Assembly: GCF_006345805.1 (NCBI RefSeq)
Contig: NW_021835742.1
Span: 1-47,873 of the forward strand
Length of the DNA stretch: 47,873 bases
Direction of reading: 5' to 3'
From: Octopus sinensis
Taxonomy: Eukaryota
Position 1 is the first letter of the stretch. Every line of letters starts with the position of its first letter. Both the position numbers and the translations under genes were made by a program. The notes under the pieces were generated by a model. The model was given only the letters and a program-made list of their open reading frames with translations. It made no database searches and had not been told where the DNA came from. Shown here piece by piece: positions 1 to 45,514 of this stretch.

Positions 1-3000
1 TGGATTAATTTTATGAAAAAGAAACAGAAGAGAAAGAAAAAGGAGAAATGTGATCAAGGAGTAAGCACTGGAGTAAGTTTATGAAAAAGAAGAGAGGAGA
101 AGAGAAAGAAAAAGGGAAATGTGGTCAAGGAGAAAGAACGTGCTGGATTAGTTTTGGAAAATGAGAGGAGAAGAGAAAGAAAAAGGAGAAATGTGATCAA
201 GGAGAACGTACTGGAGTAGGTTTATGGAAAATGAGGAGATGAGAAAGAAAAAGGAGAAATGTGATCAAGGAGAAAGTACTGGAGTAAGTTTATGAAAAAT
301 GAGAAGAGAAAGAAAAAAAGGGAAATGTGATCAAGGAGAAAGTAATTGAATAAGTTTCTGGAAAATGAGTAGAAGAGAAAGAAAAAGGAGAAATGTGATC
401 AAGGAGAAAGTACTGGAGTAAGTTAATGGAAAATGAGAAGAAGAGAATGAAAAAGAAGAAATGTGATCAAGGAGAAAGAACAGGAGTAAGTTTATGAAAA
501 ATGAGGAGAAGAGAAAGAAAAAGGAGAAATGAGATCAAGGAGAAAGTACTGGAGTAAGTTTATGGAAAATGAGGAGAGAAAGAAAAAGGAGAAATATGAT
601 CAAGGAGAAAGTACTGGAGTAAGTTTATGGAAAATGAGAAGAAGAGAAAGAAATGTGATCAAGGAGAAAGTACTGGAGTAAGTTTATGGAAAATGAGAAG
701 AAGAGAAAGAAAAAGGAGAAATGTGATCAAGGAGAAAGGACTGGAGTAAGTTTATGGAAAAATGAGGTGAAGAGAAAGAAAAATGAGAATTGTGATCAAG
801 GAGAAAGTACTGGAGTAAGTTTATGAAAAATGAGGAGAAGAGAAAGAAAAAGGAGAAATGTGATCAAGGAGAAAGTACTGGAGTAAGTTTATGGAAAATG
901 AGGAGAAGAGAAGAGAAAGAAAAAGAGAAATGTGATCAAGGAGAAAGTACTGAAGTAAGTTTACGTAAAATGAGAGATGAGAAAGAAAAAGGAGAAATTT
1001 GATCAAGGAGAAAGTACTGGAGTAAGTTTATGGAAAATGAAAAGAAGAGAAAGAAAAAGAAGAAATGTGATCACGGAGAAAGTACTGGAGTAAGTTTATG
1101 AAAAATGAGGAGAAGAGAAAGAAAAAGAAGAAATGTGATCAAGGAGAAAGTACTGGAGTATGTTTATGTAAATGAGGAGAAGAGAAAGAAAAAGGAGAAA
1201 TGTGATCTAGGAGAAAGTACTGGATTAATTTCATGAAAAAGAAACAGAAGAGAAAGAAAAGGAGAAATGTGATCAAGGAGAAAGCACTGGAGTAAGTTTA
1301 TGAAACTGAGGAGAAGAGAAAGAAAAAGGGAAATGTGTCAAGGAGAAAGTGCTGGAAAGTTTATGGAAAATGAGGAGAAGAGAGAAAGAGAAAGAAAAAA
1401 GGAGAAATGTGATCAGGGAAAGTACTGGAGTAAGTTATGAAAAATGAGGAGAAGAAGAGAAAGAAAAAGAGAAATGTGATCAAGGAGAAAGTACTGAAGT
1501 AAGTTTATGAAAATGAGGAGAAGAGAAAGAAAAAGGAGAAATGTGATCAAGGGTAAATTACTGGAGTACGTTTATGGAAAATGAGGAGAAGAGAAAGAAA
1601 AAGGAGAAATGTGATCAAGGAGAAAGTACTGGAGTAAGTTTATGAAAAATTAGGAGAAAAGAAAGATAAAGGAGTAATGTGATCAAGGAGAAAGTACTGA
1701 GTAGTAAAGTTTATGGAAAATGAGAAGAAGAGTAAGAAAAAGGAGAATTGTGATCAAGCAGAAAGTACTGGAGTAATTTTATGAAAAATGAGGAGTGAGA
1801 AAGAAAAGGAGAAATTTGATCAGGAGAAAGTACTGGAGTAAGTTTATGAAAAATGAAAAGAAGAGAAAGGAAAGAAAAGAAGAAATGTTGATCAAGGAGA
1901 GAGAAAGTGCTGGAGTAAGTTATGAAAAATGAGGAGAAGAGAAAGAAAAAGAAGAAAAAGTGATCAAGGAGAAAGTACTGGAGTATGTTTATGGTAAATG
2001 AGGAGAGAGAAAGAAAAAAGGAGAACATAAATGTGATCAAGGAGAAAGAGAAAGTACTGGAGTAAGTATATGGAAAATGAGAAGAAGAGTAAGAAAAAGG
2101 AGAATTGTGATCAAGCAGAAAGTACTGGAGTAATTTTATGAAAAATGAGGAGATGAGAAAGAAAAAGGAGAAATTTGATCAAGGAGAAAGTACTGGAGTA
2201 AGTTTATGGAAAATGAAAAGAAGAGAAAGAAAAAGAAGAAATGTGATCAAGGAGAAAGTGCTGGAGTAAGTTTATGAAAAATGAGGAGAAGAGAAAGAAA
2301 ATGAAGAAATGTGATCAAGGGGAAAGTACTGGAGTATGTTTATGGTAAATGAGGAGAAGAGAAAGAAAAAGAGAAAGGAGAAAGGAATCTAGAGGAAAGT
2401 ACGGATAATTTATGAAAAAGAAGAGAAGAGAAAGAAAAAGAGAGAAATGTGATCAAGGAGTAAGCACTGGAGTAAGTTTATGAAAATTGAGGAGAGAGAG
2501 AAAGAAAAAGGAGAAATGTGGTCAAGGAGAAAGTACTGGATTAAGTTTTGGAAAATGAGGAGAAGAGAAAGAAAAGGAGAAATGTGATCAAGGAGAACAT
2601 ACTGGAGTAGGTTTATGGAATTAGGAGATGAGAAAGAAAATGGAGAAATGTGATCAAGGAGAAAGTACTGAGTAAGTTTAATGAAAAATAAGAAGAAGAA
2701 GAAAAAAGGGAAATTGATCATGGAGAAAGTAATGAAAAAGTTCGGAAAATGATTAGAAGAGAAAGAAAAAGGAAAATGTGATCAAGGAGAAAGTACTGAG
2801 TGGAGTAGTTTGGAAATGAGAAGAAAGAATGAAAAAAGAAAATGTGATCAAGGAAAAGAACAGAGTAAGTTTATGAAAAATGAAGGAGAGAGAAAGAAAA
2901 AGGAGAATGAGATCAAGGAGAAAGTACTGGAGTAAGTTTATGGAAAATGAGGAGAAGAGAAAGAAAAAGGAGAAATGTGATCAAGGAGAAAGTACTGGAG

Positions 3001-6000
3001 TAAGTTTATGTAAAATGAGAAGAAGAGAAAGAAAAAGAAGAAATGTGATCAAGCAGAAAGTATTGGAGTAAGTTTCTTAAAAATGAGAAGAAGTGAAAGA
3101 AAAAGAAGAAATGTGTTCAAGGGGAAAGTGCTGGAGTAAGTTTATGGAAAATGAGGAGATGAGAAAGAAAAAGGAGAAATGTGATAAAGGAGAAAGTACT
3201 TGAGTAAGTTTATGGAAGATGAGGAGAAGAGAAAGAAAAAAGAGAATGTGATCAAGGAGAAAGTACTGAGTAATTTTATGGAAAATGAGAAGAGAAAAAA
3301 AAAGGAGAAATGTGATCAAGTAGAAAGTCTGGAGTAAGTTATGGAAAATGAGAAGAAGAAAAGAAAGAGGAGAAATGTGATCAAGGAGAATCTGGAGTAA
3401 GTTTTGGAAAATGAGGAGAAGAGAAAGAAAAAGGAGAATGTGATCAAGGAGAATGTACTGGAATAAATTTATGGAAATGAGGAGAACAGAAGAAAAAGAG
3501 AAATGTGATCAAGGAGAAAGTTCTGAAGTAAGTTTACGTAAATGAGAGAAGAGAAAGAAAAAGGAGAAATTGATCAAGGATAAATTACTTGGAGTACGTT
3601 TATGGAAATGAGAAAACGAGAAAAAGGAGAAATGTGTGATCAAGTAGAAAGTACTGGAGTAAGTTTATTGAAAATTAGAGAAAAGAAAGAAAAGAAGTAA
3701 TGTGATCAAGGAGAAAGTACTGGAGTAAGTAATGGAAAATGAGGAAGAAGTAAGAAAAGGAGAATTGTGATCAAGCAGAAAGTACTGGAGTAATTTTATG
3801 AAAATGAGGAGAGAGAAAGAAAAGGAGAAATGTGATCAAGGAGAAAGTACTGGAGTAAGTTATGGAAAATGAAAGAAGAAAACAAAGAAGAAATAGATCA
3901 AGGAGAAAGTGCTGGAGTAAGTTTATGAAAAATGAGGAGAAGAGAAAGTAAAAGAAGAAATGTGATCAAGGGAAAGTTACTGGAGTAAGTTTATGGTAAA
4001 TGAGGAGAAGAGAAAGAAAAAGGAGAAATGTGATCAAGGAGAAGTACTGGAGTAAGTTATGAAAAATGAGAAGAAGAGAAAGAAAAAGGAGAAATGTGAT
4101 CAGCAGAGTACTGGAGTAATTTATGAAAAATGAGAGATGAGAAAGAAAAGGAGAAATTGATCAAGGAGAAAGTACTGGAGTAAGTTTATGGAAATGAAAA
4201 GAAGAGAAAGAAAAGAAGAAATGTGATCAAGGAGAAAGTGCTGGAGTAAGTTTTATGAAAAATGAGAGAAGAGAAAGAAAAAGAAGAAATGTGATCAAGG
4301 GAAAGTACTGGAGTATGTTTATGGTAAATGAGGAGAAGAGAAGAAAAAAGGAGAAATGTGATCAAGAGAAAGTACTGGAGTAAGTTTTAAAAAGAGGAGA
4401 AGAGAAAGAAAAAGGAGAAATGTGATCAAGTAAGCACTGGAGTAAGTTTATGAAAACTGAGGAGAAGAGAAAGAAAAAGGAGAAATGTGATCAAGGAGAA
4501 AGTGCTGGAGTAAGTTTATGGAAAATGAGGAGAAGAGAAAGAAAAGGTGAATGTGATCAAGGAGAAAGTACTGGGTAGGTTAATGGAAAAATGAGGAGAT
4601 GAGAAGAATGGAGAATGTGATCAAGGAGAAAGTACTGGAGTAAGTTTATGAAAAATAAGAAGAGAAAAAAAAAGGAAATGTGATCAAGGAGAAAGTAATA
4701 GAAAGTTTCTGAAAATGATTAGAAGAGAAAGAAAAAGGAGAAATGTGATCAAGGAGATGTACTGGAGTAAGTTAATGGAAAATGAGAAGAAGAGAATGAA
4801 AAAGAAGAAATGTGATCAAGGAGAAAGAACAGGAGTAAGTTTATGAAAAATGAGGAGAAGAGAAAGAAAAGGAGAAATGAGATCAAGGAGAAAGTACTGG
4901 AGTAAGTTTATGGAAAATGAGAGAGAAAGAAAAAGGAGAAATGTGATCAAGGAGAAAGTACTGGAGTAAGTTTATGGAAAATGAGAATAAGAGAAAGAAA
5001 AAGAGAAATGTGATCAAGGAGAAATACTGGAGTAAGTTTATGGAAATGAGGAGAAGAGAAAGAAAAAGAAGAAATGTGATCAAGGAGAAAGGACTGGAGT
5101 ATTTTATGGAAAATGAGGTGAAGAGAATAAAAATGAGAATTGTGATCAAGGAGAAAATACTGGAGTAAGTTTATGAAAAATGAGGAGAAGAGAAAGAAAA
5201 AGGAGAAATGTGATCAAGGAGAAAGTACTGGAGTAAGTTTATGAAATGAGGAGAAGAGAAAGAGAAAGAGAATGTGATCAAGGAGAAAGTACTGGAGTAA
5301 GTTTACAAAGAAAAAAGAGAAAGAAAAAGAAAAATGTGATCAAGGAGAAAGTACTGGAGTAAGTTTATGAAAAATGAGGAGAAGAGAAAGAAAAAGGAGA
5401 AATGTGATCAAGGAGAAAGTACTGGAGTAAGTTTATGTAAATGAGGAGAAAGAAAGAAAGGAGAAATGTGATCAAGGAGAAAGTACTGGAGTAAGTTTAT
5501 GAAAATGAGAATAAGAGAAAGATAAAGGAGAAATGTGATCAAGGAGAAAGAACTGGAGTAAGTTTATGAAAATGAGGAGAAGAGAAAGATAAAGGAGAAA
5601 TGTGGTCAAGGAGAAAGTACTGGATTTTTTTATGGAAAATGAGGAGAAGAGAAAGAAAAAGGAGAAATGTGATCAAGGAGAAAGTACTGGAGTAAGTTTA
5701 TGGAAAATGAGGAGAAGAGAAAGAAAAATGAGAAATGTGATCAAGGAGAAAGTACTGGAGTAAGTTTATGGAAAATGAGAAGAGAAAGAAAAAGGGGAAA
5801 TGTGATCAAGGAGAAAGTACTGGAATAAGTTTATGGAAAATGAGTAGAAGAGAAAGAAAAAGGAGAAATGTGATCAAGGAGAAAGTACTGGAGTAAGTTT
5901 ATGGAAAATGAGAAGAAGAGAAAGAAAAAGAAAATGTGATCAAGGAGAAAGTAACAGAGTAAGTTTATGAAAATGAGGAGAAGAGAAAGAAAAGGAGAAT

Positions 6001-9000
6001 GTGATCAAGGAGAAGTACTGGAGTAAGTTTATGGACAATGAGGAGAGAAGAAAAGGAGAAATGTGATCAAGGAGAAGTACTGGAGTAAGTTTATGGAAAA
6101 TGAGAGAAGAGAAAGAAAAAGAAGAATGTGATCAAGGAGAAATACTGGAGTAAGTTTATGGAAAATGAGAATAAGAGAAATAAAAGAAGAAATGTGATCA
6201 AGGAGAAAGAACTGGAGTAAGTTTATGAAAAATGAGGAGAAGAGAAAGAAAAAGGAGAAATGTGATCAAGGAGAAAGTACTGGAATAAATTTATGGAAAA
6301 TGAGGAGAAGAGAAAGAAAAAGAGAAATGTGATCAAGGAGAAAGTACTGAAGTAAGTTTACGTAAAATGAGGAGAAAATAAAGGAGAAATGTGATCAAGA
6401 GAAAGACTGGAGTACGTTTATGGAAAATGAGGAGAAACGAAAGAAAAAGGAGAAATGTGATCAAGGAGAAAGTACTGGAGTAAGTTTATGAAAAATTAGG
6501 AGAAAAGAAGAAAAAGGAGAATGTGATCAAGGAGAAAGTACTGGAGTAAGTTTATGAAAAATGAGGAGAAGAGAAAAAAAGGAGAAATGTGATCAAGGAG
6601 AAAGTACTTGGAGAAAGAATTGGAAAATGAGAAGAGAGTAAGAAAAGAAGAAATGTGATCAAGCAGAAAGTACTGGAGTAATTTTATGAAAATGAGGAGA
6701 TGAGAAAGAAAAAGGAGAATTTAATCAAGGAGAAAGTACTGGAGTAAGTTTATTGAAAATGAAAAGAAGAGAAAGAAAAGAAGAATGTGATCAAGGAGAA
6801 AGTACTGGAGTAAGTTTATGAAAATGAGAGAAGAGAAAGAAAAGAAGAAATGTGATCAAGGAGAAAGTACTGGAGTAAGTTTATGTAAATGAGAGAAGAG
6901 AAAGAAAAAGGAGAAATGTGATCAAGGAGAAAGTACTGGAGTAAGTATATGGAAAATGAGAAGAAGAGTAAGAAAAAGGAGAATTGTGATCAAGCAGAAA
7001 GTACTGGAGTAATTTTATGAAAAATGAGGAGATGAGAAAGAAAAAGGAGAAATTTGATCAAGGAGAAAGTACTGGAGTAAGTTTATGGAAAATGAAAAGA
7101 AGAGAAAGAAAAAGAAGAAATGTGATCAAGGAGAAAGTGCTGGAGTAAGTTTATGAAAAATGAGGAGAAGAAAAGAAAAAGAGGAATGTGATCAAGGGAA
7201 AGTACTGGAGTATGTTTATGGTAAATGAGGAGAAGAGAAGAAAAAGGAGAAATGTGATCTAGGAGAAAGTACTGGATTAATTTATGAAAAAACCAGAAGA
7301 GAAAGAAAAAGGAGAAATGTGATCAAGGAGTACACTGGAGTAAGTTTATGAAAACTGAGGAGAAGAGAAAGAAAAAGGAGAAATGTGGTCAAGGAGAAAG
7401 TGCTGGATTTAGTTTTTGGAAAATGAGGAGAAGAGAAAGAAAAAGGAGAAATGTGATCAAGGAGAACGTACTGGAGTAGGTTTATGGAAAATGAGGAGAT
7501 GAGAAAGGAAAAGGAGAAATGTGATCAAGGAGAAAGTACTGGAGTAAGTTTATGAAAAATGAGGAGAAGAGAAAGAAAAAAGGGAAATGTGATCAAGGAG
7601 AAAGTAATTGAATAAGTTTCTGGAAAATGAGTAGAAGAGAAAGAAAAAGGAGAAATGTGATCAAGGAGAAAGCACTGGAGAAAGTTAATGGAAAATGAGA
7701 AGAAGAGAATGAAAAAGAAGAAATGTGATCAAGGAGAAAGAACAGGAGTAAGTTTATGAAAAATGAGGAGAAGAGAAAGAAAAAGGAGAAATGAGATCAA
7801 GGAGAAAGTACTGGAGTAAGTTTATGGAAAATGAGAAGAGAAAGAAAAAGGAGAAATATGATCAAGGAGAAAGTACTGGAGTAAGTTAATGGAAAATGAG
7901 AAGAAGAGAAAGAAAAAGAAGAAATGTGATCAAGGAGAAATTACTGTAGTAAGTTTATGGAAAATGAGGAGAAGAGAAAGAAAAAGAAGAAATGTGATCA
8001 AGGAGAAAGGACTGGAGTAAGTTTATGGAAAATGAGGTGAAGAGAAATAAAAATGAGAATTGTGATCAAGGAGAAAGTACTGGAGTAAGTTTATGGAAAA
8101 TGAGGAGATGAGAAAGAAAAAGGAGAAATGTGATCAAGGATAAAATACTGGAGTAAGTTTATGTAAAATGAGGAGAAGAGAAAGAAAAAGGAGAAATGTG
8201 ATCAAGGAGAAAGTATTGGAGTAAGGTTATGGAAAATGAGGAGAAGAGAAATATAAAGGAGAGATTTGATCAAGGAGAAAGTGCGGAGTAAGTTTATGGA
8301 AAATGAGGAGATGAGAAAGAAAAAGGAGAAATGTGATCAAGGATAAAGTACTGGAGTAAGTTTATGTAAAATGAGAAGAAGAGAAAGAAAAAGAAGAAAT
8401 GTGATCAAGCAGAAAGTATTGGAGTAAGTTTATTAAAAATGAGAAGAAGAGAAAGAAAAAGAAGAAATGTGATCAAGGGGAAAGTGCTGGAGTAAGTTTA
8501 TGGAAAATGAGGAGATGAGAAAGAAAAAGAGAAATGTGATCAAGGGGAAAGTACTGGAGTAAGTTTATGGAAAATGAGGAGATGAGAAAGAAAAAGGAGA
8601 AATGTGATCAAGGAGAAAGTACTTGAGTAAGTTTATGGAAAATGAGGAGATGAGAAAGAAAAAGGAGAAATGTGATCAAGGAGAAAGTACTGGAGTAATT
8701 TATTAAAATAAGGAGAAGAAAGAAAAAGGAGAAATGTGATCAAGGAGAAGTACTGGATTAAGTTTATGGAAAATAAGAAGAAGAGAAAGAAAAAGGAGAA
8801 ATGTGATCAGGAGAAATTACTGGAGTAAATTTATGAAAAATGAGAGAAGAGAAAGGAAAAGGAGAAATGTTATCACAGAAAGTATTGGAGTAAGTTTATG
8901 AAAATGAGAAGAAGAGAAAGAAAAGAAGAAATTTGATCAAGCAGAAAGTATTGGAGTAAGTTTATGAAAATGAGAAGAATAGAAAGATAGAAGAAATGTG

Positions 9001-12000
9001 ATCAAGGAGAAAGTACTGGAGTAAGTTTATGGAAAATGCGAAGAAGAGAAGAAAATGACAAATGTGATCAAGAAGAAATACTGGAGTAAGTTTATGAAAA
9101 TGAGGAGAAGAGAAAGAAAAAGAGAAATGTGATCAAGGAGAAAGGACTGGTTTAAGTTTATGAAAAATGAGGTGAAGAGAAATAAAAATGAGAATGTGAT
9201 CAAGGAGAAAGTACTGAGATAAGTTTATGGAATTAGAGAAGAGAAAAAAATGAAGAAATGTGATCAAGGAGAAAGGACTGGATTAAGTTTATGGAAAATG
9301 AGGTGAAGAGAAATAAAAATGAGAATTGTGATCAAGGAGAATGTACTGGAGTAAGTTTATGAAAATGAGGAGAGAAAAGTAAAAGGAGAAATGTGATCAA
9401 GGAAAAGTACTGTAGTAAGTTTATGAAAATGAGGAGAAAGAAAGAAAAAGAAGAAATGTGATCAAGGAGAAAGTACTGGAGTAAGTTTATGAAAAATGAG
9501 GAGAAGAAAAGAAAAAGAAGAAATGTGATCAAGGAGAAATACTGGAGTAATTTATGAAAATGAGGAGAAGAAAGAAAAAGAGAATGTGATCAAGCGAAAG
9601 TACTGGAGTAAGTTTATGAAAAATGAGAGAAGAGAAGAAAAAGAAGAAATGTGATCAAGGAGAAAGTACTGGAGTAAGTTTATGGAAAATGAGGAGAAGA
9701 GAAAGAAAAATGAGAAATGTGATCAAGGAAAAGTACTGTAGTAAGTTTATGAAAAATTAGGAGAAAAGAAAGAAAAAGAAGAAATGTGATCAGGAGTAAG
9801 TACTGGAGTAAGTTTATGGGAAAGAGGAGAAGAGAAAGAAAAAGGAAGATGTGATCAAGGAGAAATTGCTGGAGTAATTTATGAAAAATTAGGAAGAAAG
9901 AAAGAAAAGGAGAAATGTGATCAAGGAGAAATGCTGGAGTAAGTTTATGGAAAATGAGGAGAAGAAAGAAAGAGGTGAAATGTGATCAAGGAGAAAGTAC
10001 TGGAGTAACTTCATGAAAAATGAGAAGAAGAGAAAGAAAAAGGCGAAATGTGATCAAGGCGAAAGTACTGGAGTAAGTTTATGAAAAATGAGGAGAAGAG
10101 AAAGAAAAAGCGAAATGTGATCAAGGATAAAGTACTGAGTAAGTTTATGTAAAATGAGGAGAGAGAAAGAAAAAGAGAAATGTGATCAAGGAGAAAGTAC
10201 TGGAGTAATTTATTAAAAATGAGAAGAAGAGAAAGAAAAAGGAGAAATGTGATCAAGGAGAAAGTACTGGAGTAAGTTTATGGAAAATGAGGAGATGAGA
10301 AAGAAAAAGGAGAAATGTGATCAAGGAGAAAGTACTGGAGTAAGTTTATGGAAAATGAGGAGATGAGAAAGAAAAAGGAGAAATGTGATCAAGGAGAAAG
10401 TACTGGAGTAAGTTTATGGAAAATGAGGAGAAGAGAAAGAAAAAGGAGAAATGTGATCAAGGAGAAAGTACTGGAGTAAGTTTATGAAAAATGAGGAGAA
10501 GAGAAAGAAAAAGGAGAAATGTGATCAAGGAGAAAGTACTGGAGTAAGTTTATGGAAAATGAGAAGAAGAGAAAGAAAAAGGAGAAATGTGATCAAGGAG
10601 AATTACTGGAGTAAGTTTATGAAAAATGAGGAGAAGAGAAAGGAAAGGAAATGTGATCAAGCAGAAAGTATTGGAGTAAGTTTATGAAAAATGAGAAGAA
10701 GAGAAAGAAAAAGAAGAATTGATCAAGCAGAAAGTATTGGAGTAAGTTTATGAAAAATGAAGAAGAGAAAGATAAAGAAGAAATGTGATCAAGGAGAAAG
10801 TACTGGAGTAAGTTTATGAAAAATGAGAAGAAGAGAAAGAAAATGACAAATGTGATCAAGAAGAAATCACTGGAGTAAATTTATGAAAAATGAGGAGAAG
10901 AGAAAGAAAAAGGAGAAATGTGATCAAGGAGAAAGGACTGGTTTAGGTTTATGGAAAATGAGGTGAAGAGAAATAAAAATGAGAATTGTGATCAAGGAGA
11001 AAGTACTGGAGTAAGTTTATGGAATATGAGGAGAAGAGAAAAAAATGAAGAAATGTGATCAAGGAGAAAGGACTGGATTAAGTTTATGGAAAATGAGGTG
11101 AAGAGAAATAAAAATGAGAATTGTGATCAAGAAGAATGTACTGGAGTAAGTTTATGAAAAATGAGGAGATGAGAAAGTAAAAGGAGAAATGTGATCAAGG
11201 AGAAAGTACTGGAGTAAGTTTATGAAAAATGAGGAGAAGAGAAAGAAAAAGAAGAAATGTGATCAAGGAGAAAGTACTGGAGTAAGTTATGAAAAATGAG
11301 GAGAAGAGAAAGAAAAAGAAGAAATGTGATCAAGGAGAAATTACTGGAGTAAGTTTATGAAAAATGAGGAGAAGAGAAAGAAAAAGAAGAAATGTGATCA
11401 AGCGAAAGTACTGGAGTTAGTTTATGTAAAATGAGGAGAAGAGAATGAAAAAGGAGAAATGTGATCAAGGAGAAAGTACTGTATTAAGTTTATGGAAAAT
11501 GAGGAGAAGAGAAAGAAAACGGAGAAATGTGATCAAGGAGAAAGTATTGGAGTAAGGTTATGGAAAATGAGGAGAAGAGAAATATAAAGGAGAGATGTGA
11601 TCAAGGAGAAAGTGCTGGAGTAATGTTATGAAAAATTAGGAGAAGAGAAAGAAAAAGGAGAAATGTGATCAAGGAGTAAGTACTGGAGTAAGTTTATGGA
11701 AAATGAGGAGAAGAGAAAGAAAAAGGAGAAATGTGATCAAGGAGAAAGTGCTGGAGTAAGTTTATGGAAAATGAGAAGAAGAGAAAGAAAAAGGAGAAAT
11801 GTGATCAAGGAGAAAGTACTGGAGTAAGTTTATGAAAAATGAGGAGAAGAGAAAGAAAAAGGAGAAATGTGATCAAGGAGAAAGTACTGGAGTAAGTTTA
11901 TGGAAAATGAGGAGAAGAGAATGAAAAAGAGGAAATGTGATCAGGAGAAAGTACAGAGTAAGTTTATGGAAAATGAGAAGAAGAGAAAGATAAAGGAGAA

Positions 12001-33000: not shown

Positions 33001-36000
33001 GGAGTAAGTTTATGGAAAATGAGGAGAAGAGAAAGAAAAAGGAGAAATGTGATCAAGGAGAAAGTACTGGAGTAAGTTTATGAAAAATGAGAATAAGAGA
33101 AAGATAAAGGAGAAATGTGATCAAGGAGAAAGAACTGGAGTAAGTTTATGAAAAATGAGAATAAGAGAAAGATAAAGGAGAAATGTGATCAAGGAGAAAG
33201 AACTGGAGTAAGTTTATGGAAAATGAGAAGAAGAGAAAGATAAAGGAGAAATGTGATCAAGGAGAAAGTACTGGAGTAAGTTTATGAAAAATGAAGAAAA
33301 GAGAAAGAAAGAACAGAAATGTGATCAAGGAGAAAGTACTGGAGTAAGTTTATGAAAAATGAGGAGAAGAGAAAAAAAAGAGAAATGTGATCAAGGAGAA
33401 AGTACTGGAGTAAGTTTATGAAAAATGAGGAGAAGAGAAAGAAAAAAGAGAAATGTGATCAAGGAGAAAGTACTGGAGTAAGTTGATGGAAAATAAAGAG
33501 AAGAGAAAGAAAAAAGAGAAATATGATCAAGGAGAAAGTACTGGAGTAAGTTTATGAAAAATGAAGAGAAGAGAAAGAAAAAAGAGAAATGTGATAAAGG
33601 AGAAAGTACTGGAGTAAGTTTATGAAAAATGAGGAGAAGAGAAAGAATAAAGGGATATGTGATCAAGGAGAAAGTACTGGAGTAAGTTCATGAAAAATGA
33701 GGAGAAGAGAAAGAAAAAAGAGAAATGTGATCAGGAGAAAGTACTGGAGTAAGTTTATGAAAAATGAGAGAAAGAAAGAAAAAGAAGAAATGTGATAAAG
33801 GAGAAAGTACTGGAGTAAGTTTATGAAAAATGAGGAGAAGAGAAAGAATAAAGGGATATGTGATCAAGGAGAAAGTACTGGAGTAAGTTCATGAAAAATG
33901 AGGAGAAGAGAAAGAAAAAAGAGAAATGTGATCAAGGAGAAAGTACTGGAGTAAGTTTATGAAAAATGAAGAGAAGAGAAAGAAAAAAGAGAAATGTGAT
34001 CAAGGAGAAAGTACTGGAGTAAGTTTATGAAAAATGAGGAGAAGAGAAAGAAAAAGAGAAATGTGATCAAGGAGAAAGTACTGAAGTAAGTTTATGAAAA
34101 ATGAAGAGAAGAGAAAGAAAAAAGAGAAATATGATCAAGGAGAAAGTACTGGAGTAAGTTTATGAAAAATGAGGAGAAGAGAAAGAAAAAAGAGAAACGT
34201 GATCAAGGAGAAAGCACTGGAGTAAGTTTATGAAAAATGAGAAGAGAAGAGAAAGATAAAGGAGAAATGTGATCAAGGAGAAAGTACTGGAGTAAGTTTA
34301 TGAAAAATGAGAATAAGAGAAAGATAAAGGAGAAATGTGATCAAGGAGAAAGAACTGGAGTAAGTTTATGAAAAATGAGAATAAGAGAAAGATAAAGGAG
34401 AAATGTGATCAAGGAGAAAGAACTGGAGTAAGTTTATGAAAAATGAGAATAAGAGAAAGATAAAGGAGAAATGTGATCAAGGAGAAAGAACTGGAGTAAG
34501 TTTATGGAAAATGAGGAGAAGAGAAAGAAGAACATAAATGTGATCAAGAGAAAGTACTGGAGTAAGTTTATGAAAAATGAAGAAAGAGAAAAAAAAGAGA
34601 AATGTGATAAGGAAAAAGTACTGGAGTAATTTATGAAAAATGAGGAAAGAGAAGAAAAAAGTGAAATGTGATCAAGGAGAAAGTACTGGAAGTAAGTTAT
34701 GAAAAATAAGAAGAAGAGAAAGAAAAAAGTGAAATGTGATCAAGGAGAAAGTACTGGAGTAAGTTTATGAAAAATAAGGAGAAGAATGAAAAGATAAAAG
34801 TGATCAGGAGAAAGTAACCCTGGAGTAAGTTTATGGAAGATGAGGAGACGAGAACGAAAAAGATCAATGTGATAAAGGATAAAGTACTGGAGTAAGTTTA
34901 TGAAAAATGAGAGAAGAGAAAGAATAAAGAGAAATGTGATCAAGGAGAAGTACTGGAGTAGTTTATGAAAAATGGAGAGAAGAGAAAACAAAAAGAGAAA
35001 TGTGATGAAGGAGAAAAGTACTTGGAGTAAGTTTATGAAAATGAGGAGAAGAGAAACAAAAAGAAATGTGATCAAGGAGAAAGTACTGGAGTAAGTTTAT
35101 GAAAAATGAAGAGAAGAGAAAGAAAACAGGGAATGTTATCAAGGAGAATCTATGGAGTAATTTCTGAAAAATGGATAAGAGACAAAAAAGAGAAATGTGA
35201 TCACGAAAAGTACTGGATAAGTTTATGAAAAGTGAGGAGAAGAAGAAAAAAAAGAAATGTGATTAGGAGAATCTACTGGAGTAAGTTTATGGAAAATGAG
35301 GAGAAGAAAAGAAAAAAGAGAAATTGATCAGGATAAAGTACTGGAGTAAGTTTATGAAAAAGAAGAGAAGAGAAAGAACAAAGAGAAATTTGATAAAGAA
35401 AGTACTGGATATGTTTATGAAAAATGAGGAGAAGAGAAAAAAAAGAGAATTGATCAGGAGAAAGTACTGGATTAATTTATGAAAAATGAGGAGAAGAAAA
35501 GAAAAAAAGGAGAATGTGATCAGGAGAAAGTACTGGAGTAATTGATGGAAATGAAGAGAAAGAAGAAAAAAGAGAATATGATCAAGGAGATTACTGGAGT
35601 TTTTATGAAAAATGAAGAGAAGAGAAAGAAAAAGAGAAATGTGATAAAGGAGAAAGTACTGGAGTAAGTTTATGAAAAAATGATGAGAAGAGAAGAAAAA
35701 AGAGAAATATGATCAAGGAGAATGTACTGGAGTAAGTTTATTAAAAATAGGAGACGAGAAAGAAAAGAGAAATTGATCAAGGAGAAATACTGGAGTAAGT
35801 TTATGAAAAATGAAGAGAAGAGAAAGAAAAAAGAGAAATGTGATCAAGGAGAAAGTACTGGAGTAAGTATATGAAACATGAGGAGATGAGAAAGAAAAAA
35901 GAGAAATGTGATCAAGGAGAAAGTACTGGAGTAAGTTTCTGAAAAATGAAGAGAAGAGAATGAAAAAAGAGAAAAGTGATCAGGGAGAAAGTACCGGAGT

Positions 36001-39000
36001 ATGTTTATGGAAGATGAGAAGAGAACGAAAAATGAGAAATGTGATAAAGGATAAAGTACTGGAGTAAGTTTATGAAAAATGAGAAGAAGAGAAAGAATAG
36101 AGAGAAATGTGATTAAGGAGAAAGTACTGGAGTAAGTTTATGAAAAATGAGGAGAAGAGAAAGAAAAATGAAATGTGATCAAGACAAGTACTGGAGTAAG
36201 TTTATGACAATGAAGAGAAAAAAGAAAAAAGAGAATGTGATCAAGGAGAAAGTACTGGAGTTTAAGATTTTATAAATGAGGAGAAGCGAAAGAAAAAGAG
36301 GAATGTGATCAAGGAAATGTACTGGAGTAATTTATGAAAAGGAAGAGAAGAGAAAGAAAAAAGAGAATATGATCAAGGAGAAAGTACTGAGTAAGTTTAT
36401 GAAAAATGAGAGAGAGAAATAAAAAGAGAATGTATCAAGGGAGAAAGTACTGATACGTTATGAAAAATGAGGAAAGAAAAGAAAAAAGAGAAGTGATCAA
36501 GAGAAGTACTGGAGTAAGTTTATGAAAAATGAAGAGAAGAAGAAAAAAGAGAAATGTGATAAGGAGAAAGTACGGAGTAGGATTATGAACAAATGAGGAG
36601 ATGAGAAAGAAAAAGAGAAATGTGTTCAAGAGAAAAATACTGGAGTAAGTTTATGAAAAATGAAGAGAAGAGAAGAAAAAAAAGAAATGTGATCAAGGAG
36701 AAGTACTGGAGTATTTTATGGAAGATGAGAGAAGAGAACGAAAAGGAGAAATGTGATAAGGGATAAGTACTGTAAGTAAGTTTATGAAAAATGAGGAGAA
36801 TAAAGAATAAAGAGAAATGTGATCAAGGAGAATGTACTGGAGTAAGTTTATGAAAAATGAGAGACGAGAAAGAAAAAGTAAATGTGATCAAGGAGAAAGT
36901 ACTGGAGTAAGTTTATGAAAAATGAGGAGAAGAAAAGAAAAGAGAAATTGATCGAGGAGAAAGTACTGGAGTAAGTTTATGAAAAATGAAGAGAAGAGAA
37001 AGAAAAGAGAAATATAATCTAGGAAAGTACTGGAGTAAGTTTATTAAAAGAGAGAAGAGAAAGAAAAAAGAGAATGTGATAAAGGATAAAGTACTGAGTA
37101 AGTTTATGAAAAATTGAGGAGACGAGAAAAAAAAGAGATGTGATCAAGGAGAAACTACTGGAGTAAGTTTATGGAAAATGAGGAGAAGAGAAAGAAAGAA
37201 CAGAAATTTGATCAAGGAGAAGTACTGGAATAATTTTTATGAAAAATGGAGAAGAGAAAGAAAAAAGAGAAATGTTATCAAGGAGAAACTAATGGAGTAA
37301 GTTTGAAAAAAATGAGAGATAAGAGAAAAAAAGGAGAAATGTGATCAAGGAGAAAGTACTGGAGTAAGTTTATGAAAAATGAGGAGAAGAGAAAGAAAAA
37401 GAGAAATGTGATCAAGAGAAAGTACTGGAGTAAGTTTATGAAAAATGAGGAGAAGGAAAGAAAAAGAGAAATGTGATCAAGGGGAAAGTACTGGAGTAAG
37501 TTTATGAAAAATGAAGAGAAGAGAAAGAAAATGAGAAATATGATCAGAGAGAAAGTACTGGAGTAAGTTTATGAAAAATGAGGAGAAGAGAAAGAAAAAA
37601 GAGAAATGTGATCAAGGAGAAACTAATGGAGTAAGTTTATGAAAAATGAGGATAAGAGAAAGAAAAAGGAGAAATGTGATCAAGGAGAAAGTACTGGAGT
37701 AAGTTTATGAAAAATGAGGAGAAGAGAAAGAAAAAAGAGAAATGTGATCAAGGAGAAACTAATGGAGTAAGTTTATGAAAAATGAGGATAAGAGAAAGGA
37801 AAAGGAGAAATGTGATCAAGGAGAAAGTACTGGAGTACGTTTATGGAAAATGAGGAGAAGAGAAAGAAAAAAGAAAAATGTGATCAAGGAGAAAGTACCG
37901 GAGTAAGTTTATGAATAATGAAGAGAAGAGAAAGAAAAAAGAGAAATGTGATAAAGGAGAAAGTACTGAGTAAGTTTATGAAAAATGAGGAGAAGAGAAA
38001 AAAAAGAGAACGTGATCAAGAAAGTACTGGAGTAAGTTTATGAAAATGAGGAGAAGAGAAGAAAAAAGAGAAATTTGATCAATGAGAAAGTAACTGGAGT
38101 AAGTTGATGGAAAATAAGAAGAGAAGAGAAAGAAAAAGAGAAATGTGATAAAGGAGAAAGTACTGGAGTAGTTTATGGAAAATGAGGAGAAGAAAAGAAT
38201 AAAGGGATATGTGATCAAGGAGAAAGTACTGGAGTAAGTTCATGAAAAATGAGGAGAAATAAAGAAAAGAGAAATGTGATCAGGAGAAAGTACTGGAGTA
38301 AGTTTATGAAAAATGAGAGAAAGAAAGAAAAAAGAGAATGTGATCAAGGAGAAAGTACTGGAGTAAGTTTATGAAAAATGAGGAGAAGAGAAAGAAAAAG
38401 AGAAATTTGATCAAGGAGAAAGTACTGGTAAGTTTATGAAAAATGAGGAGAAGAGAAAGAAAAAAGAGAAATGTGATCAAGGAGAAAGTACTGGAGTAAG
38501 TTTATGAAAAATGAAGAGAATAGAAAGAAAAAAGAGAGATGTGATCAAGGAGAAAGTACTGGAGTAAGTTGATGGAAAATGAAGAGAAGAGAAAGAAAAA
38601 AGTGAAATATGATCAAGGAGAAAGTACTGGAGTAAGTTTATGAAAAATGAGGAGAAGAGAAAGAAAAAAGAGAAATATGATCAAGGAGAAAGTACTCGAG
38701 TAAGTTTATGAAAAATGAAGAGAAGAAGAAAAAAGTGAAATATGATCAAGGAGAAAGTACTGGAGTAAGTTTATGAAAATTAGGAGAAGAGAAAGAAAAA
38801 GAGAAATATGATCAAGGAAAAGTACTCGAGTAAGTTTATGAAAAATGAAGAGAAGAGAAAACGAAAAAGTGAAATGTGATAAGGAGAAAGTACTGGATTA
38901 AGTTTATGAAAATGAGGAGAAGAGAAAGAAAAAGAGAAATGTGATCAAGGAGAATGTACTGGAGCAATTTTATGAAAAATGAGAAGAGAAAGAAAAAAGA

Positions 39001-39173
39001 GAAATGTGATCAAGGAGAAAGTAATGGAGTAAGTTTATGAAAAATGAAGAGAAGAGAAAGAAACAAGGGAAACGTGATCAAGGAGAAAGTACTGGAGTAA
39101 GTTTATGAAACATGAGGAGAAGAGAAAGAAAAAAAGAGAAATGTGATCAAGGAGAAAGTACTGGAGTAAGTTT
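1..39173 (+). repeat. 68-bp tandem satellite array, purine-rich strand on + (about 575-585 monomers, estimated)
   Basis: TGATCA recurs at 194 and 262 and GTACTGG at 10264 and 10332, i.e. a 68-bp period. The same monomer continues uninterrupted to 39173. Copy number is estimated from length/68, not counted. Confidence 0.99.
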
Positions 39174-41308
39174 CTCCTTGATCACATTTCTCCTTTTTCT
39201 TTCTCTTCTCCTCATTTTCCATAAACTTACTCCAGTAGTTTCTCTTTGATCACATTTCTCTTTTTTCTTTCTCTTCTCCTCATTTTCCATAAACTTACTC
39301 CAGTAGTTTCTCTTTGATCACATTTCTCTTTTTTCTTTCTCTTCTCTTTATTTTTCATAAACTTACTCCAGTACTTTCTCCTTGATCATATTTCTCTTTT
39401 CTCATTCTCTTCTCCTCATTTTTCATAAACTTACTCCAGTACTTTCTCCTTGATCACATTTATCTTTTTATTTTCTCTTCTCCTCATTTTTCATAAACAT
39501 ACTCCAGTACTTTCTCCTTTATAGCATTTCACTTTTTTCTTTCCCTTCTCTATATTTTTCATAAACTTACTCCAGTACTTTCTCCTTGATCACATTTCTC
39601 TTTTTTCTTTCTCTTCTCCTAATTTTCCATAAACTTACTCCAGTAGATTCTCCTTGAACACATTTTTCTTTTTTCTTTCTCTTCTCCTCATTTTTCATAA
39701 ACTTACTCCAGTACTTTCTCCTTGATCACATTTCTACTTTTTCTTTCTCTTATCCTCATTTTTCATAAACTTACTCCATTAGTTTCTCCTTGATCACATT
39801 TCTCTTTTTTCTTTCTCTTATCCTCATTTTTCATAAACTTTTTCCAGTACTTTCTCCTTGATCACATTTCTCTTTTTCTCTTTCTCTTCTCCTCATGTTT
39901 CATAAACTTACTCCAGTACTTTCTCCTTGATCACGTGTCTCTTTTTTCTTTCTCCTCTTCTCATTTTTCATAAACTGACTCCAGTAATTTCTCCTTGATC
40001 ACATTTCTCTTTTTTCTTTCTCTTCTCCTCATTTTTCATAAACTTTCTCCAGTACTTTCTCCTTGATCATATTACTCTTTTTTCTTTCTCTTCTCTTCAT
40101 TTTTCATAAATTTACTCCAGTACTTTCTCCTTGATCACATTTCTCTTTTTTTCTTTCTCTTCTCCTCATTTTTCATAAACTTACTCCAGTACATTCTCCT
40201 TGATCACATTTCTCTTTTTCTCTTTCTCTTCTCCTCATGTTTCATAAACTTACTCCAGTAAATTCTCCTTCATCACATTTCACTTTTTTCTTTCTCTTCT
40301 CTTCATTTTTCATAAACTTACTCCAGTACTTTCTCCTTGATCACATTTCTCTTTTTTCTTTCTCCTCTTCTCATTTATCATAAACTTACTCCAGTAGTTT
40401 CTCCTTGATCACATTTCTCTTTTTTTTTCTCTTCTCCTCATTTTTCATAAACTTACTCCAGTACTTTCTCCTTGATCATATTTCTCTTTGTTCTTTCTCT
40501 TCTCTTCATTTTTCATAAACTTAGTCCAGTACTTTCTCCTGAATCACATTTCTCTCTTTTCTTTCTCTTCTCCTCATTTTTCATTAACTTACTCCAGTAC
40601 TTTCTGCTTGATCACATTTCTCTTTTTTCTTTCTCTTCTCCTCATTTTTCATAAACTTACTCCAGTACTTTCTCCTTGATCACATTTCTCTTTTTTCTTT
40701 CTCTTCTCCTCATTTTCCATAAACTTACTCCAGTAGATACTCCTTGATCACATTTCCCTTTTTTATTTCTCTTCTCGTCATATTTCATAAACTTACTCCA
40801 GTATTTTCTCCTTGATAACATTTCTCCTTTTTCTTTCTCTTCTCCTCATTTTCCATAAACTTACTCCAGTAGATTCTCCTTGATCACATTTCTCTTTTTT
40901 CTTTCTCTCCTCTTCATTTTTCATAAACTTACTCCAGTACTTTCTCCTTGATCACATTTCTCATTTTTCTTTCTCTTCTCCTCATTTTCCGTAAACTTAC
41001 TCCTGTACTTTCTCCGGGATCACATTTCTCTTTTTTCTTTCTCTTCTCCTCATTTTTCATAAACTTACTCCAGTACTTTCTCCTTGATCACATTTCTCTT
41101 TTTTCTTTATCTTCTCCTCATTTTTCATAAACTTACTCCAGTACTTTCTCCTTTATCACATTTCTCTTTTTTCTTTCTCTACTCTTCTTTTTACATAAAC
41201 TTAATCCAGTACTTTCTCCTTGATCACATTTCTCTTTTTTCTTTCCCTTCTCCTCATTTTCCATAAACTTACTCCAGTAGATTCACCTTGATCACATTTC
41301 TCTTTTTT
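39174..41308 (-). repeat. Inverted block of the same 68-bp satellite (about 31.5 monomers)
   Basis: Sequence switches to the reverse complement (TTTCTCCTTGATCACATTTCTC...) at 39171-39174 and back (CTGGAGTAAGTTT) at 41309. 32 TGATCA-equivalent positions were counted by eye. Confidence 0.99.
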
Positions 41309-44300
41309 CTGGAGTAAGTTTATGAAAAATGAAGAGAGGAGAAAGATAAAAAGAGAAATGTGATCAAGGAGAAAGTACTGGAGTAAGTTTATGAAACATG
41401 AGGAGAAGAGAAAGAAAAAAAGAGAAATGTGATCATGGAGAATGTACTGGAGTAAGTTTATGATAAATGAAGAGAAGAGAAAGAAAATAGGGAAATATGT
41501 TCAAGGAGAAAGTACTGGAGTAAGTTTATGAAAAGTGAGAAGAGAACGAAAAAGAAATGTAATCAAGGAGAAAGTACTGGAGTAAGTTTATGAAAAATGA
41601 AAGAAGAGAAAGAAAAAATGAAATGTGATCAAGGAGAAATACTGGAGTAGTTTATGAAAATGAGGAGAAGAGAAAGAAAAATGAGAAATGTGATCAAGGA
41701 GAATGTACTGGAGTAAGTTTATGAAATATGAGGAGAAAAGAAAGAAAAAAGAGAAATGTGATCAAGGAGAAAGTACTGGTGTAAGTTTATGGAAAATGAA
41801 GAGAAGAGAAAGAAAAAAGAAAAATGTGATCAAGGAGAAAGTACTGGAGTAACTTTATGAAAAATGAGGAGAAGAGAAAGAAAAAAGAGAATGTGATAAA
41901 GGAAAAACTACTGGAGTAAGTTTATGAAAAATGAGGAGAAGAGAAAGAAAAAAGAGAAATGTGATCAAGGAGAAAGTACTGGAGAAAGTTTATGAAAATG
42001 AGGAGAAGAGAAAGAGAAAAGAGAAATGTGATCAAGGAGAAAGTAGAGGAGTAAGTTTATGAAAAATGAGGAGAAGAGAAGAAAAAAGAGAATGTGATCA
42101 GGAGAAACTACTGGAGTAAGTTAATGGAAAATGAGGAGAAGAGAAAGAAAAAGAGAAATGTGATCAAGGAGAAGGTACTGGAGTAAGTTTATGAAAAATG
42201 AAGAGAAGAGAAGAAAAAAGAGAAATTGTGATCAGGAGAAACTAATGGAGTAAGTTTATGAAAAATGAGGATAATAGAAAGAAAAGGAAAAGTGATCAAG
42301 GAGAAAGTACTGGAGTAAGTTATGAAAAATGAGATAAGAGAAAGAAAAAAGAGAAATGTGTTCAAGGAGAATCTACTGGAGTAAGTTTATGGAAAATTAG
42401 GAGAAGATAAAAAAAGAGAAATGTGATCAAGGAGAAACTACTGGAGTAAGTTTATGGAAAATGAGGAGAAGAGAAAGAAAAAAGAGAAATGTGATCAAGG
42501 TGAAGGTACTGGAGTAAGTTTATGAAAAATGAAGAGAAGAGAAAGAAAAAAGAGAAATGTGATAAAGGAGAAAGTACTGGAGTAAGTTTATGAAAAATGA
42601 GGAGAAGAGAATGAAAAAGAGAAATGTGATCAAGGAGAATGTACTGGAGTAAGTTTATGAAAACTGAAGAGATGAGAAAGAAAAAGGGAATATGATCATG
42701 GAGAAAAGTACTGAGTAGTTTAATAAAATGAGTAGAAGATAAAGAAAAAAGAGATATGTGATCAAAGAAACTACTCGAGTAAGTTTATGGAAAATGAGGA
42801 GAAGAGAACGAAAAGGAGAAATGTGATCAAGGAGAAAGTACTGGAGTAAGTTTAATGAAAAATGAGAAAGAACGAAAAAGAGAAATGTGATCAAGGAGAA
42901 AGTACTGGAGTAAGTTTTGAAAAATGAAGAGAAGAGAAAGAAAAAAAGAAAATGTGATCAAGGAGAAGTACTGGAGTAATTTTTATGAAGAATGAGGAGA
43001 AAGAAAGAAAAAAGAGAAACGTGATCAAGGAGAAAGTACTGGAGTAATTATATTAAAATGAAGAGAAGAGAAACAAAAAAGAGAAATATGATCAAGGAGA
43101 AAGTACTGGAGTAGTTTATGTGAAAAAAAATGAGGAGAAGAAAAGAAAAAGAGAAATGTAATCAAGGAGAAAGTACTGGAGTATTTTATGAAAAATGAAG
43201 AGAAGAGAAAGAAAAGTAAACTGTGACAAGGAGAAGTACAGAGTAAGTTATGAAAAATCAGGAGAAGGAAAGAAAAAGAGAAATGTGATAAAGGAGAAAG
43301 TTCTGGATTAAGTTTATGAAAAATAAAGAGAAGAGAAGGAAAAAAGAAAAATGTGATCAAGGAGAAAGTACTGGAGTAAGTTTATGAAAAATGAGGAGAA
43401 GAGAAAGAAAAAAGAGAAATGTGATCAAGGAGAATGTACTGGAGTAAGTTTATGAAATATGAGGAGAATAGAAAGAAAAAAGAGAAATGTGATCAAGGAG
43501 AAAGTACTGGTGTAAATTTATGGAAAGTAAAGAGAAGAGAAAGAAAAAAGAGAAATGTGATCAAAGAGAAACTACTGGAGTAAGTTTATCAAAAATGAAG
43601 AGAAGAGAAAGAAAAAAGAGAAATGTGATAAAGGAGAAAGTACTGGAGTAAGTTTATGAAAAATGAGGAGAAGAGAAAGAAAAAAGAGAAATGTGATAAA
43701 GGAAAAAGTACTGGAGTAAGTTTATGAAAAATGAGGAGAAGACAAAGAAAAAAGAGAAATGTGATCAAGGAGAAAGTACTGGAGTAAGTTTATGAAAAAT
43801 GAAGAGAAGAGAAAGCAAAAAGAGAAATGTGTTCAAGGAGAAACTACTGGAGTAAGTTTATGAAAAATGAGGATAAGAGAAAGAAAAAGGAGAAATGTGA
43901 TCAAGGAGAAAGTGCTGGATTAAGTTTATGAAAAATGAAGAGAAGAGAAAGAAAAAAGAGAAATGTGATCAAGGAGAAAGTACTTGAGTAAGTTTATGAA
44001 AAATGAGGAGAAGAGAAAAAAAAAGAGAAATGTGATCAAGGAGAATGTACTGGAGTAAGTTTATGGAAACTGAGGAGAAGGTAAAGTAAAAGAGAAATGT
44101 GATCAAGGAGAAATCTGGAGTAGTTTATGATAAATGAAGAAAGAGAAAGAAATAAGAGAATATGATCAAGAGAAGTACTGGAGTAAGTTTATGAAAAATG
44201 AGTAAGAAAAAAGAGAAATGTGATCAAGGAGAAAGTACTGGAGTAGTTTATGAAAATGAAGAGAATAGAAGAAAAAAAGAAATGTGATCAAGAGAAAGTA

Positions 44301-44432
44301 CTGGAGTAAGTTTATGAAAAATGAAGAGAAGAGAAAGAAAAGTGAAATGTGATAAAAGAGAAAGTACTGGAGTAAGTTTATCAAAAATGAGGAAAGAGAA
44401 AGAAAAAAGAGAATGTGATCAGGAGAAAGTAC
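41309..44432 (+). repeat. 68-bp satellite, forward orientation (about 46 monomers)
   Basis: Forward monomers resume at 41309 and end abruptly at ...GGAGAAAGTAC (44432). Confidence 0.98.
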
Positions 44433-44612
44433 AACAGCATCACAAAAACAACAACAAACCACAAGAAAATGGAGGGGGAGAAGAAGAAGAAAAAGAAGAA
44501 GAAGAAGTAAAGGAAAGAAGGCGACAGAAGAAAAAGAAGAAGAAGAAGGAAAGAAAAGAAGAGGAAAGGAGAAAAAGCAGAAAAAGAGAAGAAGAAGAGA
44601 AGAAGAAGAAAA
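44433..44612 (+). repeat. Degenerate (CAA)n followed by (GAA)n-rich low-complexity tract
   Basis: AAAAACAACAACAAACC followed by GAAGAAGAAGAAAAAGAAGAAGAAGAAG-type sequence. Confidence 0.85.
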
Positions 44613-44960
44613 GTCAAGAGGAAATTATTTCGTGGAAGTGTGGATAAATAACCACACGGCACCACAGAATAAAGAGAACAATGTGAAACAAAAAACAGTA
44701 GAAAAAACATAAGTATTATATTAACACTGAAGTCACACTCATACATATATGAACATACACGTTTTCAGGAATAGAATTTTGATGCAGACGATTATCAACT
44801 GCCAGTCATTGTCATGTTCAGACACAATCAAATAAATATAACACGAATATGGAAAGTGATTATGACTTCCAGTAATAGGGAGTGAGAATAAATAGAAATC
44901 AGGGAATATTTAATTAAAGACACATTATATTCCTCATGTATAAATGACAACATTGAAAGG

Positions 44961-44966
44961 ACTTAC
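44961..44966 (-). promoter_or_regulatory. 5' splice donor GTAAGT of the downstream LRR exon
   Basis: Plus-strand ACTTAC at 44961-44966 reads GTAAGT on minus, immediately after the 72-nt exon (...ACTCT|GTAAGT). Confidence 0.9.
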
Positions 44967-45038
44967 AGAGTCTGTAAACTGTGAAGGTCTTCAAACGTTC
45001 CTTCTTCAATCCTCGAAATTTTATTGTTCCAGAGATAT
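44967..45038 (-). CDS. Internal 72-nt coding exon encoding one typical 24-aa leucine-rich repeat: (L)YLWNNKISRIEEGTFEDLHSLQT(L)
   Basis: Minus strand reads ttcctgcttcag|ATATCTCTGGAAC...CAGACTCT|gtaagt. Exactly 72 nt, phase 2-2, no stop. Translation fits LxLxxNxIxxIxxxxFxxLxxLxxL. Confidence 0.93.
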
Positions 45039-45066
45039 CTGAAGCAGGAAACAATATTTCTTAGTT
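45039..45066 (-). promoter_or_regulatory. 3' splice acceptor with pyrimidine tract and branch-point-like ACTAAG
   Basis: Minus strand reads ...AAACTAAGAAATATTGTTTCCTGCTTCAG|, with the CTAA motif about 23 nt upstream of the AG. Confidence 0.8.
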
Positions 45067-45150
45067 TGACATAGTATGGAATTGGCATAAAATATTTAAA
45101 TATTGTTCTTGAGGTATAGGAAGAAAATCATAGGTAAATAAAATGACAAT

Positions 45151-45424
45151 AGAAGAAGAAGAAGAAGAAGAAGAAGAAGAAGAAGGAGAAGAAGGAGGAG
45201 GCGGAGAAGAAGAAGAAGAAGAAGAAGAAGAAGAAGGAGAAGGAGTAGAAGAAGAAGAAGAAAAAGAAGAAAAAAAGAAGAGAAGAAGAAAAGAAGAAGA
45301 AGAAGAAGAAGAAGAAGAAGAAGAACAACAACAACAACTACAACAACAACAAAACAACAACAGCACAACAAGATCAAGTAGAACAAGATGAAGAAGAAGA
45401 AGAAGAACAAGAAGAAGAAGAAGA
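45151..45424 (+). repeat. Compound microsatellite (GAA)n/(GGA)n/(CAA)n/(GAA)n inside the short intron
   Basis: Long GAA runs at 45151-45325, CAA run at 45326-45371, GAA again at 45390-45424. Confidence 0.95.
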
Positions 45425-45514
45425 TAGTGCACTCTGAAAGTTTATTCGTTTCTGAGAGAAAATATATCAGCATCAATGTATACATTCAGATAATAGTATT
45501 AAGAAACTGAACGA

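Follow-up and report, generated by a model that had tools for sequence, protein, structure and literature searches.

The window analysed here is the whole 47,873-bp stretch of Octopus sinensis DNA in contig NW_021835742.1 (RefSeq assembly GCF_006345805.1, positions 1 to 47,873, forward strand). It carries a minus-strand pair of leucine-rich repeat (LRR) cassette exons, and the DNA on both sides of the pair appears to have been swollen by a single 68-bp satellite. We modestly favour the reading of these arrays as structurally intronic expansions in a copy of a family gene, most likely neutral bloat; they would lie in intron positions as passive, roughly neutral filling and would not be a regulatory device. 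The word intron is applied here from the architecture of the family, because the window contains no far-side exon.

An LRR exon pair between satellite arrays

A non-satellite island of ~1.7 kb between the arrays carries two small intact exons, A and B (Table 1). Both are preceded by a pyrimidine tract and AG, both are followed by GTAAGT, and both are phase 2. The spliced frame is open because the final TT of exon A and the first A of exon B form a Leu codon. The spliced product of 48 aa, NFAHNNIATIKEGTFTGLSNLKSLYLWNNKISRIEEGTFEDLHSLQT(L), matched Pfam LRR_8 (E=4.8e-14, 52.3 bits against a cutoff of 27) and also LRR_4 (46.9 bits against 27), and was classed as LRR coding sequence. A sequence-only reading of this DNA had called two LRR exons, a donor at 44966 and a 482-bp intron between the exons; the LRR_8 match and the good splice sites bear out the exons, and the donor and intron were recovered to the base. 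Its 354 bp of non-repeat sequence after the donor had to be redrawn, as the non-satellite stretch is 534 bp (44433..44966), including an AGA microsatellite at 44479..44610. When 24 family proteins were compared with the whole window by tblastn, only exons A and B were matched, in agreement with the earlier finding of no compatible LRR-type exon in the unique sequence after the donor; exons for LRRNT, LRRCT, GPS/GAIN and 7TM_2 were not found in the window by this search. Exons A and B alone cannot encode a protein.

The left array begins 534 bp after the consensus donor in the sense of the gene, and a good acceptor follows the end of the right array by 513 bp. One exon boundary is visible for each array: on the left it is the donor at 44966, on the right the acceptor at 45593. 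Relatives have introns at the positions of both arrays. The satellite is antisense to the gene, as are the single-copy homologues of its monomer in annotated introns of paralogues (see below), and the gene-sense strand of the array is 76% C+T, which confirms the pyrimidine-rich sense strand reported earlier. On this strand there is no consensus 5′ splice site outside an inverted block, and stops occur in all frames; the direct array is therefore unlikely to create false exons. The proposal of a giant satellite-filled intron is partly supported by the paralogue introns at these positions and by the splice sites, and falls short in that no far-side exon lies in the window. On the upstream side, where the same satellite was also proposed to be filling an intron, it is present at 46106..47873, with the correction that this array begins 513 bp upstream of exon A, past a relic monomer.

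The + strand of the window is 49% A and 27% G. Tandem Repeats Finder (TRF) reported 586 copies of a 68-bp unit, TGGAGTAAGTTTATGAAAAATGAGGAGAAGAGAAAGAAAAAAGAGAAATGTGATCAAGGAGAAAGTAC, over 1..39173 with a score of 56530, and the unit carried on over 39171..41310 and 41309..47873. A BLAST search with a consensus trimer gave unbroken cover of 1..44432, which is 98.8% of 1..44966 and reproduces the earlier estimate that about 99% of this region is one 68-bp repeat; it also covered 46106..47873. With ~650 head-to-tail copies of a non-coding unit that is longer than a microsatellite unit, the arrays were classed as satellite DNA. The description of everything from 44432 to base 1 as satellite was right as to continuity and not as to uniformity, since a 2.14-kb inverted block and two subfamilies are included. 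The subfamilies, V1 and V2, were distinguished by consensus and variant counts and switch sharply near 12 kb, a boundary that is approximate at the 2-kb bin resolution used. V1 spans 1..~12 kb and recurs as a close variant at 46106..47873; the rest of the left array, ~12..44.4 kb, is V2. The far-left 12 kb (V1) is closer to the array across the island than to the V2 array next to the island. In the array at 1..12000 the purine-rich strand is the + strand, antisense to the LRR exons.

Pairwise identity between monomers was ~89% and was flat (~0.89) at lags of 1-12, which ruled out a higher-order repeat. Differences in monomer length are mainly A-run indels. The edge monomers are degenerate and the subfamilies lie in domains; the array sequence was taken as real because a collapsed or invented repeat would not show these two features. 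Stops are present in all six frames of the monomer consensus, and the longest open reading frame (ORF) in the satellite (173 aa) had no protein homologue. No match was found in an Rfam scan of the window or in a comparison of an exact monomer 30-mer with metagenome contigs, and a literature search on a 68-bp satellite or on octopus satellites returned nothing relevant. A k-mer scan inside the arrays found no non-repetitive stretch of 25 bp or more. Hidden exons and transposon insertions within the arrays were ruled out by this result, together with the lack of any tblastn match there.

Table 1. Positions of the arrays, the exons and the intervening sequence in the window (gene sense is the minus strand).
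Feature	Positions	Strand	Description	Method
Satellite array V1	1..12000	+	TTTATGG.. / ..AAGGAGAAATG variants	TRF, BLAST, consensus counts
Satellite array V2	12001..39170	+	TTTATGA.. / ..AAAGAGAAATG; ~89% pairwise	
Inverted block	39171..41310	-	~31 V2 monomers, 2140 bp	TRF, BLAST
Satellite array V2	41311..44432	+	last monomers, ~44050..44432, degenerate	
Non-satellite flank downstream of exon B (gene sense)	44433..44966	-	534 bp; AGA-type microsatellite at 44479..44610	
Exon B	44967..45038	-	72 bp, one LRR (YLWNNKISRIEEGTFEDLHSLQT + CT of next Leu); acceptor ttcag/A, donor CT/GTAAGT	
Intron between exons A and B	45039..45520	-	482 bp; (AGA)n/(CAA)n microsatellite at 45151..45424	
Exon A	45521..45592	-	72 bp, one LRR (NFAHNNIATIKEGTFTGLSNLKS + TT of Leu); acceptor ctatag/A, donor TT/GTAAGT	
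Non-satellite flank upstream of exon A (gene sense)	45593..46105	-	(GAA)n at 45699..45846, relic monomer at 45884..45966, G-rich unique stretch	
Satellite array, V1-like	46106..47873	+	own TTTACGG variant; runs past window end	

The inverted block is ~90% complementary to the neighbouring arrays, and its breakpoints fall within monomers. Its best match to any other stretch was 91.8%, which is the background between monomers and ruled out a fold-back chimera. Of the 26 gene-sense GTAAGT hexamers in the window, 24 are in this block and the other two are the exon donors, leaving none in the direct arrays. By its complementarity, RNA transcribed across the block could pair with its neighbours over ~2 kb (at ~90%) as double-stranded RNA (dsRNA). 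At the inversion junction at 41310 (41275..41380), the sense strand reads a pyrimidine tract and CTTACTCCAG, then 36 nt (AAAAAAGAGAAATGTGATCAAGGTGAATCTACTGGA), then GTAAGT. This 36-nt segment makes a textbook predicted cryptic micro-exon, open in the phase left by exon B.

Cassette paralogues and the origin of the satellite

An exhaustive HMMER scan returned thousands of LRR matches, among which those of high identity were octopus proteins. The closest were O. vulgaris P0158 and P0060 (41/46 aa, 89%), and the next-best were all O. vulgaris or O. sinensis family members. Relatives in the two species are named 'adhesion G-protein coupled receptor G6-like', 'slit homolog-like' and 'LRR-containing protein 15-like'; GPS and 7TM_2 domains are present in the longer family members, and many models are LRR-only. 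An octopus-specific expansion of aGPCRs (adhesion G-protein coupled receptors), 'group 3', includes some members with LRRs (Ritschard et al., 2019, PMC6408891). By their similarity, exons A and B belong to an octopus-specific LRR/adhesion-GPCR-like family, in agreement with that group. A peptide word-index search with the 48 aa gave no candidate sharing three 5-mers, a result that is uninformative, since P0060 shares an 18-residue identical run and was missed; for common LRR words, a negative from the word index is therefore not to be relied on. No record matched the 41-aa ORF over exon B exactly.

Five paralogue loci, about 405 kb in total, were sampled: L001, L002 and L004 from O. sinensis, and L003 and L005 from O. 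vulgaris. In all five, each 72-bp exon encodes one LRR and aligns end to end with the window exons, with the same boundaries and phase, and such exons are internal cassette exons. Introns in the LRR regions of these loci are ~0.6-10 kb, with one of 32 kb, and the genes span 40-97 kb (114 kb in a sixth family gene, P0172). The island gave many matches to the exon-plus-intron cassettes of paralogues at 66-90% identity. Its intron flanks are 84-91% identical to those of the best paralogue cassettes, and the pair was therefore taken to be native to the family; the flank downstream of exon B is homologous to paralogue cassette introns at 87-91%. The window locus is thus like the octopus LRR/aGPCR family in amino acid identity (89%), in its 72-bp, one-LRR-per-exon, phase-2 cassettes and in its homologous intron flanks. 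It differs in having a satellite array, which is found at none of the sampled family loci: the ~405 kb contained no 68-bp array, only GA-rich patches of 80-170 bp.

In vertebrates, one-LRR-per-exon genes include the glycoprotein-hormone/LGR receptors and Slit, whose 72-bp symmetrical-phase exons each encode one 24-residue LRR. The octopus genes resemble these in architecture only. Exons of this kind can be duplicated and skipped because their phase is symmetrical; in O. sinensis, one 24-aa LRR unit separates each isoform from the next (525, 501 and 477 aa). A decayed cassette exon was found at L002 ~2549-2618 (70 nt, with a frameshift and a stop), within an annotated intron. The O. vulgaris model P0170 skips an intact cassette exon at L003 39364-39435, which the O. 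sinensis model P0162 (L004) includes, so that the use of cassette exons, or their annotation, is variable.

In comparisons with L004 6939-7011, L003 39364-39435 and L002 8774-8846, exon B is matched at 75-81% nt and its flanking introns are better conserved, at 87-91%, whereas exon A shows no such contrast between exon and intron. The contrast at exon B is suggestive of diversifying selection acting at LRR surfaces, or of intron homogenisation. Locus L005 corresponds to O. vulgaris OX597815.1 215,271,745-215,353,941 of 215,602,707, ~250-330 kb from the chromosome end, and a 1.1-kb (ACCT)n array lies at the end of L002. Family members may favour repeat-rich chromosome regions.

The monomer consists of a complex core of ~41 bp and a GA-rich, microsatellite-derived part. 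The core occurs as a single copy in L002 at 5951-5979 (27/29) and at 11191-11233 (37/43, E=6e-6). The two copies both run antisense to the gene next to (TTC)n, in annotated introns (7.4 kb and 5.0 kb) between LRR exons; the copy at 11 kb ends with a partial second start of the unit. In the window, the degenerate relic monomer at 45884..45966 retains a core, GGAGTAAGTTGATGAAAAA, at 45930..45948. Upstream of exon A the order in the gene sense is relic, (TTC)n, exon A, which is the order of seed, (TTC)n and exon in L002. The upstream array starts just beyond the relic, and both arrays have the orientation of the seed relative to the exons. Sense-strand (TTC)n is present in the island at 44479..44610, 45151..45424 and 45699..45846, as in the introns of L001 and L002. 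Among the inter-LRR introns at L001 37281-57044 and L002 1001-12272, degenerate sense-strand (TTC)n tracts of 0.1-1.9 kb were seen. Satellite-like BLAST patches in L001, L003, L004 and L005 were rejected as seeds, being GA-rich matches that do not include the complex core.

The single copies in L002 and the relic in the window are three observations of a seed, and they indicate that the satellite arose in place from a segment of a cassette intron. A local birth by amplification of such a segment beside a microsatellite appears reasonably firm, short of proof. Slippage or unequal exchange at the seed would then have built up no less than 44.4 kb of array on one side and 1.8 kb or more on the other. 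Birth from a local seed of unique sequence or microsatellite is a general model of satellite origin. The present case is like that model in having a single-copy monomer homologue beside (TTC)n in paralogous introns and a degenerate relic at the array edge, and differs from it in that the seed lies within a duplicated exon cassette of a gene family. Several introns therefore each hold a potential seed.

Weighing the intronic reading against its rivals

Several points weigh against arrays that are intronic in a family gene. No exon beyond either array was found in the window by tblastn with the 24 family proteins. Nor was any transcript, annotated protein or called gene found to contain these exons, a weak objection given that obvious relatives escaped the word index. 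Decayed cassette exons occur in the family, as at L002 ~2549, and 144 bp of intact ORF is too short a stretch to say much about ongoing selection. On the sense strand there are 397 strong acceptor-like sites (CTTACTCCAG); with the 24 donors and the ~2 kb of potential dsRNA of the inverted block, these sites would be hazards for a functional intron. Finally, the far-left V1 array resembles the array across the island, a pattern as compatible with one larger satellite domain as with two separate introns.

Several of these observations bear on a less likely but serious rival, namely that the island is what remains of a dead LRR cassette pair, stranded in a large satellite domain that grew from a family gene copy and destroyed it, with no transcript crossing the arrays. 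It is live because decayed cassette exons exist in the family. The 47.9 kb of the window hold only two exons, against ~10-19 tblastn exon hits per sampled family model, and paralogues pack 7-10 LRR exons into about 20 kb. Pseudo-exons are present in the family, V1 monomers lie on both sides of the island, and a protein with exons A and B was not found (the best matches being 41/46) by a word-index search that missed relatives. Comparison of the paralogues also points to rapid birth and death of cassettes and genes in the family (see also PMC6408891). Set against this, the exons have kept an open frame, the LRR consensus, phase and splice sites despite 18-25% nt divergence from the best-matching sampled cassettes. 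The sense strand of the direct array is free of GTAAGT, which is compatible with its being tolerated in a transcript, or is perhaps a mere effect of base composition.

An assembly artefact, in which the island or the inverted block was mis-joined into satellite reads and the window is perhaps a small unplaced repeat contig, is improbable. Family fragments (L002 and L004) do lie on unplaced O. sinensis contigs of 44-48 kb, similar in size to the window; the monomers vary in length mostly by A-run indels, as in noisy long-read assemblies, and the inversion breakpoints are inside monomers. Both arrays, however, are oriented as the seeds predict, the island is flanked by the relic and by degenerate edge monomers, and the order of seed, (TTC)n and exon upstream of exon A is that of L002. 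Nor does the inverted block reproduce adjacent sequence as its reverse complement.

There is a slim chance that the left array is a live intron of an expressed receptor gene. Its pre-mRNA would then include more than 40 kb of pyrimidine-rich sequence without false donors, derived from a satellite with a single-copy intronic seed, and the inverted block, 2.1 kb long, would fold back onto its neighbours as long dsRNA, on which the heavy adenosine-to-inosine (A-to-I) editing of coleoids or their small-RNA pathways could act.

It is very unlikely that the transcript ends just past exon B, with the donor unused, translation stopping at TAA (…QTL*), ATTAAA at 44914 acting as the poly(A) signal and the left array being intergenic. 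The in-frame TAA lies within the donor and ATTAAA follows 52 nt downstream, but such a stop arises wherever GTAAGT follows a phase-2 exon that ends in TT or CT, exon A included. There is no AATAAA, and a terminus in mid-LRR, lacking LRRCT, would be unlike every family member seen.

Least probable of all is functional intron gigantism, in which a transcribed satellite times or gates expression, or recruits heterochromatin or RNA-binding proteins, after the manner of the fertility genes on the Drosophila Y. In its favour are the gene-in-satellite layout and a sense RNA that would be rich in pyrimidines, with 2027 UCUU motifs and with false donors confined to the inverted block. Against it, the array is present in 0/5 sampled paralogue loci and hence does not characterise the family, the 45 kb that are visible fall short of the Mb scale (PMC6508621), and neutral expansion predicts a local seed origin.

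Relation to known satellite introns and significance

In kl-3 and kl-5 on the Drosophila Y chromosome, simple 5-7-bp repeats fill introns that reach hundreds of kb to Mb; these introns have been shown to be transcribed and to depend on dedicated RNA-binding proteins (Fingerhut et al., 2019, PMC6508621). The present locus shares with these genes small exons and what would be an inter-exon distance that is nearly all tandem repeat. It differs in its visible length of at least 45 kb, in its complex 68-mer unit, and in that no far exon was found in the window. The likeness that had been drawn to the Drosophila Y introns is therefore a loose one, of layout only. Among octopuses, the mean intron in O. 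minor is 5.4 kb (PMC6279123), and simple repeats reach about 15% of such genomes. The lower bound for the putative left intron, 44,966 bp, is about eight times that mean (PMC6279123), and the array runs off the window.

The locus is best filed as another example of a known phenomenon, tandem-repeat expansion in an intron position, with a traceable local origin. If the array is spliced as an intron, satellite-swollen introns would arise outside Drosophila Y chromosomes, and in a fast-evolving receptor family that has been linked to the octopus nerve cord, suckers and skin; otherwise the locus shows unremarkable repeat bloat, in a genome where simple repeats already abound. Were the array a live intron that folds into dsRNA, the gene would rank as the first outside the Drosophila Y to have a satellite intron, and the origin of its satellite could be followed back to a single-copy seed in an intron. 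The firmer and smaller result is a satellite whose birth is traceable to a single-copy stretch of intron beside (TTC)n, the ancestral state being preserved by paralogues. This may be of use in understanding how tandem arrays start and how the repeat-rich genes of cephalopods tolerate them.

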